Under the pieces are notes generated by a model. It was not told the origin of the DNA. It saw only the letters and a program-made list of their open reading frames with translations, and did not search any database. Positions 13,801 through 58,500 of a DNA stretch of 64,000 nucleotides are shown piece by piece. The stretch's first letter is position 1; each line of letters starts with the position of its first letter. Both the position numbers and the translations under genes were made by a program. Source of the DNA: Blastocystis sp. Blastoise (taxonomy: Eukaryota; Protista; Bigyra: Opalinata); contig JBBPEB010000029.1 of NCBI GenBank assembly GCA_039096225.1, forward strand, positions 744,001 to 808,000, in the 5' to 3' direction.

Positions 13801-14897
13801 TAGATATAAATATTGACAAAGAAACATACAATAATGTATACCAATGCTTATGTTTATATTCCATTAATATGAATATTTATAAAAATACAAATAATAATAT
13901 ATTGAAATTTATGAAAGAAAAAAGTATATAAATTATTTTAATTGATTAAATATATATATATGTATATATAGATATACCTGTTTCTATGAATGGTTATTAT
14001 TCATTATTAAGTCATACATATACTCAATATATTCAAAATAACCGCGATTATTCTCAAGAAGAACAATTGGCTCTTTTATATCCATGGTTTTTAAATGTAT
14101 ATATATAAATATATTTTATTTATTTGTATTATTATTATTAGTTTTATATATAAATAAAATTTTTGTTTTTTTATTAATAATAATGAGTATATATATATAT
14201 ATAGACACCTCTCTCTATACAAGGAAGTAGTTGGAGAAATATTTGTTTATTATTATCTGTATATATATATATATATATATATATATATATATATATATAT
14301 ATATATAGCCATCAACAGAAGATATTCTTCCTGATCAAATATTAGAAATATATAAGTATTTCTATATATATATATATATATATTATATGTATAAATTTCT
14401 AGTAATAATTCAATAAATCATTCTTCAATTTCTTCATTGAGTATATTATATTTATGTATACTTTCGCGTGGGAATATGAAAAATATATCCTTTTTTATTC
14501 TTCTATAAATAACAAATATAATTAGAATATATAAATAAAATTCTTAATTTATTTACATATCAATAAATCAATTAAATGAAATAGAAAATACATATATAAA
14601 TCATTATACAGTTGAATATCAAAAAATGATCCATTATTTATATCCTGTATTTTATATATAGATGATTCTATTATATTATATATATAGTTATTATTAGAAT
14701 CATTAAATATGAAGAATTCAATAGATAACGTCACAATTAATAAAAACCAAAAGAAATTAACAATTAATTATAATAATGTATATATATATAATTATTTATA
14801 TATAACATTATATATATAGTCGTCTGCTTCAGATTCTATGAAGATATGTATTTCTCAATTATATACATATTTCTGTTCACTTTATCATTTTAAATGA
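10816..14897 (+). CDS. Uncharacterised multi-exon (~23 exons) protein with a probable mitochondrion/MRO targeting peptide
   Basis: Hand-spliced frame is continuous from ATG 10816 (MKRVYPFINKTNSNVLKSSRNYIKRFSTLHCRCAS: R/K/S-rich, no acidic residues) to TGA 14895-14897. It needs 21 GT-AG introns and one AT-AC intron. No family recognised. Confidence 0.7.
14259..14308 (+). other. 50-nt intron consisting only of GT(AT)23AG
   Basis: Flanking exons (..NICLLLS | PSTEDILP..) join in frame only if it is removed; 50 is not a multiple of 3. Confidence 0.8.
14485..14556 (+). other. U12-type AT-AC intron
   Basis: 5' ATATCCTTT; branch-like TTCTTAAT at 14541-14548; 3' TTTAC. Removal joins RGNMKN|ISINQL, whereas the unspliced frame hits TAA. 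Confidence 0.9.
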
Positions 14898-15202
14898 TAT
14901 ATGATAATAATAGTAAACATTATTTTTATTTTTGTATTTTTGTTTAGAAATACTATATTATTTATAAATCATAATAACAAATATTTTTCTTAATATAAAA
15001 AAAAATAACAAATACTTAAAACTTGCATGTATAAACAGAAACAAAACAACTTTTATACACGGTGTAATTGAAAACTATTAATTAATTAATTAAAAAAAAG
15101 AAGCAAAAACTGATACATAAATAATATATATATATATATATATATATAGAAAGTCGATATATCAATATAATATAACATAAAATACAAGATAATACTATAA
15201 TT

Positions 15203-16995
15203 TTATATATTTCCATGAATAAGTGGATCTTTAAAATGATTTTGTGCATACATTTCTGCTGTTATATAAGTAATAGCATTATCTAAATTAGATATCGTTG
15301 ATAATCCATGGAATGGAATATAAAAAGAGGATATATCAGATTCTACAATATTAATAGCTCTTAATAAAGGTATTAATTCTTTATATTTCGATACATGAAC
15401 TATTACATTAGCAATCTCAATATATAAACGCTTTTTTAAACCAGGTAATGTAGCTAATCCTCCCGAAATAAGAATGTTCTTTATAAGCGTCACTCGGTCT
15501 GCACGTGATGCAGAAAGAAGAGAGTCACATATTGTAAGAGGAATAGAATTATTATTAATTTCACTAGAAAATAAGCATTCAGTCACTTTCCATCTATTTT
15601 CAGCAGATATATTAATATGTTGATAATTTCCTCCTAAAGTTGTATATTCTGGTTTCTCTTCATCATTCTACATATAATAATAATAATAATAATAATAATA
15701 ATAATAATAATAATAATAATAATAATAATAATAATAATAATAATAATAATAATAATAATAATAATAATAATAATAATAATAATAATAATAATAATAATAA
15801 TAATAATAATAATAATAATAATAATAATAATAATAATAATAATAAGAAAAAAATAATAATAATAATAATAATAATAATAATAATAATAATAATAATAATA
15901 ATAATAATAATAATAATAATAATAATAATAATAATAATAATAATAATAATAATAATAATAATAATAATAATAATAATAATAATAATAATAATAATAATAA
16001 TAATAATAATAATAATAATAATAATAATATACTGGAGATCGAAAATATATAGCATTTTGAATATGAGTTCGAATTGTATTTATGGATATATCTTTGTAAC
16101 CGGGTAATAACTTTATATTATCTTCAATATTCTTACTACCTAGTTGAACACCTATATAATAAATAGAATAATAAAAAAAAAATAATAATAAATATTATAA
16201 TAAATGTAATAAAAATTAAAAACAAATAATAAATGTGATAATATATTTATAAAAATAAATAAATTTAATAACCATAACAATAATAATAATAATAATAATA
16301 ATAATAAACAAAAAAAAAGATACTTTTTAATGTTTTTTGTAGAGAAGTACCTTGTATCATAGCAATACATTGTGTTTCAAGATAACCTATATTAACAATT
16401 AATCCATTCATATTACCATAACCATATAATGAAGAACATAAGCTTGGATAAACATAAATACTTAAAACCTATATATATATATATATATATTCAATATAAT
16501 AATAATATATATAATAATAATAAGAATACCTTCATAGAATTTAAAGATATATCACATAATGCATCAATAAATGATTCAGGTGCATATATATCATAACCTA
16601 TGACTAATCTTCTTTCTGATGCTTTAATATTCATCAATCTATATATAATAATAATAATAATAATATAATTATTATTAAAAAAAAAAAATTATTTTTATAT
16701 ATAGAAAAATAAATACTGAAATAAAACATAAGACAAATAATCAGCAGCAACACTTCTCCATTCAGTTGACGTTAAAGGATTCTCACGTAAATAATATTTA
16801 GAAAGCTATAAAAAAGTATAAAAAAAGTTAATGATTAAATAAGTTGATAATTAAACTACTTACATCATAAGGAACAACAAAAAGAGGTACTGGAGAATCT
16901 CCGAATCCACATTTTGTAAACGAACAACCACAATCTATGATAACATTTTCTTTAAAGAAACTTCTATCAGAAAATTTTAATCCCTTAAGATCCAT
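15203..16995 (-). CDS. ACTR10: Actin-related protein 10 (dynactin Arp11/ACTR10)
   Basis: 6 exons. VIIDCGCSFTKCGF, SERRLVI, GLIVNIGYLETQ and NILISGGLATLPGLKKRL match the Arp10-type actin fold. Confidence 0.8.
15675..16030. repeat. ~350-bp (AAT/ATT)n microsatellite filling ARP10 intron 15668-16032
   Basis: Two perfect triplet runs separated by AAGAAAAAA at ~15844-15852. Confidence 0.95.
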
Positions 16996-55246: not shown

Positions 55247-55543
55247 ATTAATTTTGCTTATCAATGAAGATATTCTGTGTTTTTATTTCTTGTTCATGTT
55301 TGCTGTTGTAAAATCTATTTTATGTGTTACATTATTGTAGCATAAAAATGCAAAAATAATATTTTGTTTTGTTCCAATTGATGACTCTAGCATGCTAGTA
55401 ACATGTTCATGATATATATGATGTTAGAAACACATAATGACTCTATTCAATATTTTTTTACAATTTATGAAAAGTAATTCTAAGGAAATTTTAAACAATT
55501 CTTTTTATAAAAAAAAAGTTAAAAATATCGTTTATTAGGAATT

Positions 55544-58500
55544 ATGCAAAAAAATACTTTAAATGCAGTTGCTGAGTCTGCAAGGACATCTATAGGATTC
55601 CAAGCATTCTTTAAGATAATTAGTTTTCTATTTAATCTTGTTCTACTCAGATATGTGGATATAAAGATATATGGAGTTGCAAATGTGAGGTATTCTCAAC
55701 TTATTATGTTTTTTTATGTCATCATATATTTTTAAAGATTGAATCTTCTCTATACAACAATTGTATTTTTAACAAGAGAGCCTTTTCGTAAAGTATGTAT
55801 TGATTTCAAGGATGCAGCATACTTTCAAATTAATAATCTTGTGTTATTATGCATACCTATTGGAGTTTTTATTTCATTATTGTTATCATTTGTTTGGATA
55901 TCCTTGTTAGAAATACCAGATATTCAGTATTATAAAGAGGTATATATTTTTAATGAATTAATTGAATTATTTTTGTATATTATTATTATAGTTGATGATA
56001 GAAATTTTTTTTTGTATATCTATATATATATAGGGTGTCTATTTTTATTGTTTATCTGCTATAATTGAACTTTTATCTGAACCCTTTTATATATATCTTC
56101 AGTCTCATCTATATTTAAAACCAAAGGTAGATATTATTATTTATATTATTATTTATATTAATTTTATATTAATTTTATATTATATTTTATATTAATTTTA
56201 TATTAATTTTTATTTAGATAATAATTTGATATAATTTGATTATAATTTGATAATAATTAATAATATATATAGATATATATAGAGTCGACGACTTTATTTA
56301 TGAAACAAATGTTATTATTTATATTTGTTCGTTTTTATCCACAATTCCAATTATATTGTTTTATTTATTCACAACTTTTCTATACATTATTAATTACATT
56401 AATGTATGTATATATAAATGTTATTATAATGTATTATATTTATATATATAATGTTTTTATAATTCATTATCTATACATATATATTTATAGGTATATTTAT
56501 TATTATCTTTATTATATACATTCCAATCCCGATCCTTTTTATACTTCTATTTTATCATTATTCCCTCATATTGAAAAGAGTATATATATTATTTTATTAT
56601 TAAGTCACATATATATATTATATTCATATAATTCTATTAAAGAAATAATAATAAAAAATTAGAATAATAATCTTCACTATTTCAAAAACGGATCTATATT
56701 ATACTATATATATATATATATATATATACATAGATAAGCCTATATTTTCAACAAAACATACTCCATTGATTTTATCCTTCTGTAAACAGAGTCTTATAAA
56801 ACAAATGTTAACTGAAAGTGAAAAGTTTGTTATGACATTTTTAAATATATTATCTTTTCAAGAACAAGGCTTATATGAAGCTATTAATAATATCGGATCT
56901 CTTGTAATTCGATTATTATTCTTACCTTTAGAAGATGCATTCTATCTCTATTTCAGTAAAGTATATATATATATATATATATATATATATATATATATAT
57001 ATATATATATATATATATATATATATATTATAAATTGAGTATAATGGTATACTCTATACTTTTTTTTTTATTACTTATTTATGATAACTTGTTTGATAAT
57101 AGTTTCTATTCATATATTATGTAAGAATTATTTATATTGTTTATTATTAGTTTATTATATATGTTTTTATTATTATCGAGTTGATTTTTAATATTTATTT
57201 AATATATATAGGAGTTTTCTGAGGAGAAGAAGAAGGATATAAAACAAGAGACGATGATGATTCCTTTTATTTTACTCAAATTCTTATTCTATGTATATAT
57301 TTGCTTATTTTTAATAATGGATTCAATTACATTTTTTTTGATCAACTGTTTTTTAATTATTTTATTTACTTTTATTATTTTATATCTTTATGAAATATAT
57401 TGTCATCGATACCATATATAACCAATATTAAAATAGAATATATATCTTTATAAATAGAATATTCTATCTCTATAATCATATATATATATATACAGATAGG
57501 TATTACCTTCATAGTATTTGGGTATTGGTATTCACCTATTTTATTATATATATTTGGGGGTAAGAATCTCTCGACTCCCGCGGGAATCACACTCATGAGA
57601 GGATGCTGTTTCTATGTATTTATTGTTGGAATGAATGGAATTAGCGAAGCATTCTTTATGGTATATATATTATCTATATAATGTATGTGTAGTAACTATT
57701 CTAAATCTTCTTTTATTATATCTTATAATATTATCTATAAAAACTGTTTTTTATATATCTATATATCATACTATTTATATAAATAATCATATTTTTAATT
57801 AGGCTACGAGTGAAAAGAAAAAAATAGATAATTTCAATTATTATCTGATATTTATTTCAGTCACATTTTTAATCTGTTCTTCCTTCTTAACATATCCATA
57901 TAATAATAAATATTATAATCTATATTATAATTTATATAATAAATATAATAATCTATATAATAAATATAATAATCTATATAATAAATATAATAATCTATAT
58001 AATAATAATAACTATATACTATCAACTTTATCCCTTTCTGTTTTCAATAAAAATTCCCGTGGTTATCTTAATGTTTATACTCACTATTATGGAGCCTTAG
58101 GTCTTATTCTTTCTAATTCGATTTCCATGGGAATTCGTATTCTTCATCATCTTTATTATCTATATCTATATTCATCTTCTTTCAATATTAATTATGAACA
58201 ATATGTATATATATATATAAATTCCTTTTCTTACTTATACTGAACTACATTTATAAATACATATATAGAATTTATAATTATATTATACTATATTTATTAG
58301 AAATACTATAAAATAATACTATATAGTTTGAACCTGTTTTACTTGTTATTGCAGCATATATAGTTGCTTATGTTATTACAAAAGCATCTTATACTCTTTT
58401 TGGTACTCTTACCCTTAAAAATATGATTTATCATATTGCTATTGGAGGATTATGTTTCATCGGCTGTATCGTTGCTATTTTCATGTTCGATGCCGATTTT

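Follow-up and report, generated by a model that had tools for sequence, protein, structure and literature searches.

AT-AC minor introns and their spliceosomal RNAs in an AT-rich tortoise Blastocystis

Three minor introns and their host genes

The closest described relative of the system reported here is that of Blastocystis ST1, where 346 of 35,412 introns are minor, or 0.98% (Gentekaki 2017, PMC5608401), with 77% of them AT-AC and 49% in phase 0 (Larue and Roy 2023, PMC10639083). Among the known non-canonical ends of minor introns in general, AT-AA occurs most often (PMC10639083). Animal and plant U12-type (minor) introns share with the present set RTATCCTT and TCCTTRAC-type signals and the small nuclear RNAs (snRNAs) U11, U12, U4atac and U6atac, but make up ~0.3% of introns, are mostly GT-AG and lie in phase 0, a phase that canonical minor introns avoid (PMC7367187), in ~22% of cases. 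Here we describe three AT-initiated introns in a stretch of 64,000 nucleotides (the window) of Blastocystis sp. Blastoise, probably a tortoise lineage (assembly GCA_039096225.1, contig JBBPEB010000029.1, positions 744,001 to 808,000 of the forward strand), which a first-pass annotation had flagged as minor, and the genome-wide set to which they belong. The three introns prove genuine and were typed correctly, and the set adds an AT-rich member to the minor-intron system known from Blastocystis, whose features it shows in exaggerated form.

ATATCC at 14485, 18596 and 57892 and TCTTAAT at 14542, 18693 and 58066 are all present as first described, and the measured distances from branch A to 3' end (9, 11 and 9 nt) agree with the 9-11 nt given then. 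The first intron (I1; 14485..14556, + strand) is AT-AC, 72 nt long and in phase 0, with the 5' site ATATCCTT and the branch TTCTTAAT at 14541-14548 (branch A at 14547, 9 nt before the 3' end). It is present in the strict genome-wide pattern list, and its removal at the annotated ends is supported by the reading frame, which meets stops if I1 is read unspliced. The second (I2; 18596..18709, + strand) is an AT-AA intron of 114 nt in phase 2 within RPN5/PSMD12, with the same 5' site ATATCCTT and branch TTCTTAAT (18692-18699; branch A at 18698, 11 nt before the 3' end), and likewise brings stops in frame when unspliced. Its removal is documented by a public protein, P0001, which is 100% identical to the window RPN5 and skips I2 exactly in the junction alignment; of the two possible registers for the end of I2, AT-AA alone makes sense given this protein. 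P0001 probably originates from a transcript contig because its end is truncated and the share of words in the best RNA run (0.52) is about the exonic share (0.48).

The third intron (I3; 57892..58080, + strand) lies in RFT1 and is AT-AC, 189 nt long and in phase 2, with a weaker 5' site, ATATCCAT, and the branch ATCTTAAT at 58065-58072 (branch A at 58071, 9 nt before the 3' end). The earlier statement that each intron is needed for an open frame applies to I1 and I2 but not to I3, whose 189 nt are in frame and without a stop, so that the unspliced reading frame stays open. By homology, that is by collinearity with the Pfam Rft-1 profile, I3 reads as an intron: the exon before it stops at profile position 380 and the next begins at ~413, a gap of ~32 positions into which 30 spliced residues fit and 93 unspliced residues do not.

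As an independent check, a two-strand gene finder that includes a generic U12 class was self-trained on 304 kb, made up of the window plus fetched loci. It recovered I1-I3 at the same ends and called 70 major introns alongside them (3/74). The number of its minor calls stayed stable for U12 priors between 0.2 and 5%, and with scrambled decoy 5' sites no more than 1-2 false calls arose away from real branch sites; 47 of its 59 minor calls carry the 5' site ATATCCTT, partly by selection. The assignment of all three to the U12 type is supported.

Two of the hosts are conserved genes, as had been proposed. RPN5 (26S proteasome lid, PCI domain; 17367..19185, + strand) matches Pfam PCI at E 1.5e-11 and RPN5/PSMD12 in the PDB at E 1e-15; this region varies in length, and no link between PSMD12 and a minor intron was found in the literature searched. 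RFT1 (55544..58581, + strand) has 11 predicted exons and matches Pfam Rft-1 in separate exons at E 4e-22 and 3e-10. The host of I1 (11074..14897, + strand; ~816 aa, 20 predicted introns) gives only a weak hint of a COG2 C-terminus (Pfam COG2p_C, E 0.11), its other exons being without a convincing family match. Profile searches of these spliced models were done exon by exon; homologue searches with short exons gave no match, which is uninformative at such query length.

An almost purely AT-initiated set

In the genome (33.34 Mb, 34 contigs), the AT-initiated bias suggested by the three introns extends to nearly the whole set. GT-AG minor introns are almost absent: their pattern has 5 matches against 7 in controls genome-wide, and none of the 59 model minor calls starts with GT. 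Terminal dinucleotides are relaxed, as first proposed, since some ends are not AC: of 23 unselected minor introns, 19 have AC at the 3' end, three have AT (two of them doubtful) and one has AA, and AT-AG accounts for ~10-12 intron-like cases within its own stratum. The short branch spacing also holds, at 7-13 nt with a mode of 9 among the model calls, a range imposed in part by the seed pattern.

Most of this is shared with ST1, which likewise has ~1% minor introns, mostly AT-AC, without phase-0 depletion and with all four snRNAs. Its listed examples have branch spacings of 6-8 nt, AT-AG ends in 3 of 7 cases and several minor introns in one gene (three in OAO18147). AT bias, short spacing, non-AC ends and clustering are thus already in the published ST1 data, and the contrast with animals and plants, although present, is a genus trait and not a novelty of this lineage, AT-AC enrichment having been published for ST1 (77%, PMC10639083). 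Against animals and plants the fraction here is 3-5 times higher, nearly all minor introns are AT-start and phase 0 is enriched. Compared with ST1, the introns here are roughly double in number and longer (median 83 nt vs 39), their branch sites terminate in T, and ATATCTTT begins about a third of stratum A, one of two patterns counted genome-wide (A: ATATCYTT, TTCTTAAY, AC; B: ATATCC, TCYTTWAY, AC), and none of the 12 AT-start introns in a sample of 1,998 listed ST1 introns. What is new is the degree: the near absence of GT-AG, phase 0 at 66%, a 3-4-fold clustering, and an orphan gene family with four minor introns per copy.

Clustering is seen in genes that bear a minor intron, where 13 of 277 other introns are minor as well (P 1e-5 to 1e-4 at the genome rate). 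One gene (L054:4118-7945, + strand; a weak CBS-domain lead, Atlas score 0.87) has five predicted minor introns among 22. The orphan family (L036-L042, on contigs C8, C13, C14, C23, C26, C30 and C31) has at least seven copies, ~96% identical and within ~25-120 kb of a contig end, each with four AT-AC introns, starting with ATATCCTT, ATATCCTA or ATATCTTT, among its 18; no relative was found in Pfam or Atlas. All 19 exons of the seven paralogues retain their length (18 are invariant or differ by +3, and two are shortened in one copy at the fetched edge), and all 18 predicted introns, the four AT-AC ones included, vary by non-triplet indels.

We consider it likely that the set consists of ordinary U12-dependent introns belonging to the minor system of Blastocystis, ~700-860 in total in this AT-rich tortoise lineage, and that its AT start is a survivor effect. 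U11 (AAAGGG) would read the 5' site ATATC[C/T]TT, and U12, through its GUAAGGA arm, would recognise a branch of the form TYYTTAAY placed 7-13 nt before the 3' end. Under AT pressure, T would have replaced C mainly opposite a G of the snRNA; because G-U wobble would retain pairing, no change in the snRNAs would be needed. The near-total AT start would most likely arise because GT-AG minor introns can convert to major ones and AT-AC introns cannot. Such conversion would be easy here, since the major 5' site in the gene-model training, GTATAT, is one change away from GTATCC. In a published model, depletion of phase 0 is linked to conversion (PMC7367187), and for this reason the lack of phase-0 depletion here would fit AT-AC introns that do not convert.

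The main rival, also compatible with a total of 1-1.5%, holds that the AT bias owes more to new AT-AC introns gained at AT|AT proto-splice sites than to GT-AG loss, a reading that we regard as possible though doubtful. It would account for the excess of phase 0 (39/59 minor, 66%, vs 261/559 major introns; p 0.006), for the upstream exons ending in AT (25/59 minor vs 16% of major introns), for four minor introns in a gene family without recognisable homologue and for a count about twice that of ST1, for which gain was suggested earlier (PMC10639083). Yet no family of alike minor introns spans unrelated genes, the 59 introns sharing only short low-complexity matches, and AT-rich third codon positions together with non-conversion can also yield a phase-0 excess. 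An Introner origin of seven look-alike introns was rejected, as their hosts are paralogues 96% identical over 4.4 kb.

Number and density of minor introns

The genome-wide estimate comes from counting patterns against distance controls, which were preferred where available because a reversed-pattern control overstates the background (32 vs 13 at far distance). Stratum A has 121 matches at intron distance vs 13 far away, leaving ~82 after subtraction of duplicates and of ~21 copies of a coding repeat. Stratum B has 593 vs 242 in the control and comes to 250-330 after removal of a second coding repeat; by eye, 41-46 of the 100 matches listed look intronic. The first of these false sources is a 103-nt match (19/100 among the matches listed in stratum A), and the second a 77-nt match (22/100 among those listed in stratum B), TLDc-like by eye. 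Both are dispersed multi-copy coding repeats that, antisense as judged by eye, mimic minor introns (e.g. G000:C3:402017 and G000:C15:28546).

The directly counted strata set a floor near 370. Because strata A and B together cover 11 of the 23 unselected minor introns, the total comes to about 690-860 (range ~490-1,430). Major introns number ~63,000 or 53,000-54,000 by two calibrated words, and 37,000 under one window-only calibration. The minor fraction is then about 1.1-1.6%, plausibly 0.7-2.6%. It does not fall under ~0.5%, the level below which the proposed enrichment had been said to fail, and it is near the 0.98% of ST1; the ~4% density first read from the window is not supported for the genome. 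At 1.1-1.4%, three or more minor introns of 74 have a probability of 0.05-0.08, unremarkable among ~520 windows; the window is an upper-tail sample because minor introns cluster in genes.

Two points weigh against this estimate: the share of minor introns covered by the patterns rests on 23 introns, and of unselected introns near sampled sites 2-5% are minor (5-7/237 where the gene is a neighbour, 13/277 where it is the same gene), which exceeds the genome figure. It could be supposed that the minor set is truly expanded to 3-4% (at least 2,000), many branch sites being too degenerate for the patterns, and the window (3/74), the neighbouring genes (7/237) and the seed genes would agree with this. 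However, the two strata total only 330-410 genome-wide, with a ratio close to the sampled one (A:B 82:250 genome-wide, 3:8 in the sample), the sampled loci are enriched, with 8 stratum-B introns vs 1.8 expected (P 0.0006), and the introns total 53,000-63,000; we therefore hold such an expansion to be improbable.

Half of the window is taken up by one giant predicted gene with only eight introns (20351-53110, - strand; ~10,500 aa, open reading frames of 6,527 and 3,310 aa), in which no Pfam family was found in the parts scanned. A predicted protein of 2,440 aa with putative Ig (He_PIG) domains (1921-10417, - strand; E 5e-15) is probably a surface protein.

Branch signals and the minor spliceosome

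All four minor snRNAs are found, with one match each in the genome: U11 (62.9 bits), U6atac (63.8 bits), U12 (46.8 bits, E 6e-7, below the gathering score) and U4atac, a weak match of 29.7 bits that pairs with U6atac at -32.7 kcal/mol vs -16 +/- 3.5 for shuffled sequences. U11 retains AAAGGG. Two minor-specific protein families were tested: a match to PDCD7/59K (E 1.8e-4) lies under the cut-off and marks a candidate U11/U12 59K gene (G000:C32:644530-644640), and a Ubiquitin_4 (25K-like) match over the cut-off marks a candidate 25K gene (G000:C4:1778883-1779203). U6atac (L002, C21:544821) and U6 (L003, C21:551484) lie on the same strand 6.7 kb apart, and a tRNA gene with anticodon UUG lies ~440 nt upstream of U4atac (L005).

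Neither a drifted branch consensus nor the modified U12 thought to go with it is borne out. ATATCCTT followed by TCCTTAAY and AC occurs 75 times genome-wide vs 4 in controls, about as often as with TTCTTAAY, and TCTTTAAY is common too; TCTTAAT is thus one of several C-to-T branch variants tolerated by G-U wobble, and not the consensus. The commonest departures replace C by T opposite a G of U12, and position +6 of the 5' site shows the same C-to-T pattern against U11. Calculated pairing with U12 is -7.5 kcal/mol for the canonical site, -4.5 to -4.7 for the variants, with TTCTTAAT of I1 and I2 at -4.5, and -2.0 for an all-T site; the site of I3 is weak, also at -2.0. In the one U12 match, the segment with the branch-pairing arm (GUAAGGA) does not differ from the Rfam consensus in a single letter, which refutes the modified U12.

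A reading in which U12 or U6atac has changed in step with a new branch consensus, as it did in Physarum polycephalum, could find support in the 5'-site box of U6atac, which is GAGCCGAG here where the Rfam consensus is AAAGGAG (GCCGAG in place of AAGGAG). The consensus arm of the single U12 match argues against it, and so does the presence of the same U6atac box in nearly all of 66 metagenome contigs (L056-L121) of diverse origin, recovered with a search pattern that excluded human-type U6atac; we judge this reading highly improbable. The first 49 nt of U6atac are identical in several gut-metagenome contigs. A lineage-specific box was accordingly rejected; the box looks to be a variant of wide occurrence whose pairing involves fewer positions of the 5' site.

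Physarum resembles the present system in a branch A 9-12 nt from the 3' end, in ATATC[C/T]TT and in AT-AA and AT-AG ends (bioRxiv 10.1101/2020.10.12.336362), but its minor introns number 20,899, its branch site is TTTGA and its U12 arm is compensated, whereas here there are hundreds, with a canonical or wobble-compatible branch and an unchanged U12. A transformed system of that type was rejected, the U12 arm being the consensus and the expansion (~700-860) not on the scale of thousands. Least probable of all is that assembly errors, or motifs arising by chance in DNA of low complexity, account for the AT-AC calls: GC is ~20% in the genome and 13-29% in the window, where ATATCC or TCTTAAT singly is not above chance, but motif pairs are far over their controls (75 vs 4 and 121 vs 13), decoys give 1-2 true false calls, and the paralogue indels and the spliced RPN5 protein speak for real introns.

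Larue and Roy left open the cause of the many AT-AC, phase-0 minor introns of Blastocystis and requested more genomes of the clade (PMC10639083). The deep tortoise branch extends the pattern across the genus, in a stronger form and with longer introns, and comparison of intron positions makes gain testable against selective conversion. Several hundred genes here would be mis-annotated by pipelines restricted to GT/GC-AG ends; the part of the genome paper available to us (PMC12129017) does not mention minor introns.

It is conceivable, if rather unlikely in our view, that the tortoise Blastocystis set (~700-1,400) ranks among the densest outside Physarum and became almost purely AT-AC and phase-0-rich through ongoing formation of AT-AC introns at AT|AT sites, lineage-specific genes included, while the spliceosome stayed unchanged. 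Minor-intron gain is thought to be very rare, and if such ongoing gain were true Blastocystis would offer a second clear case of it.

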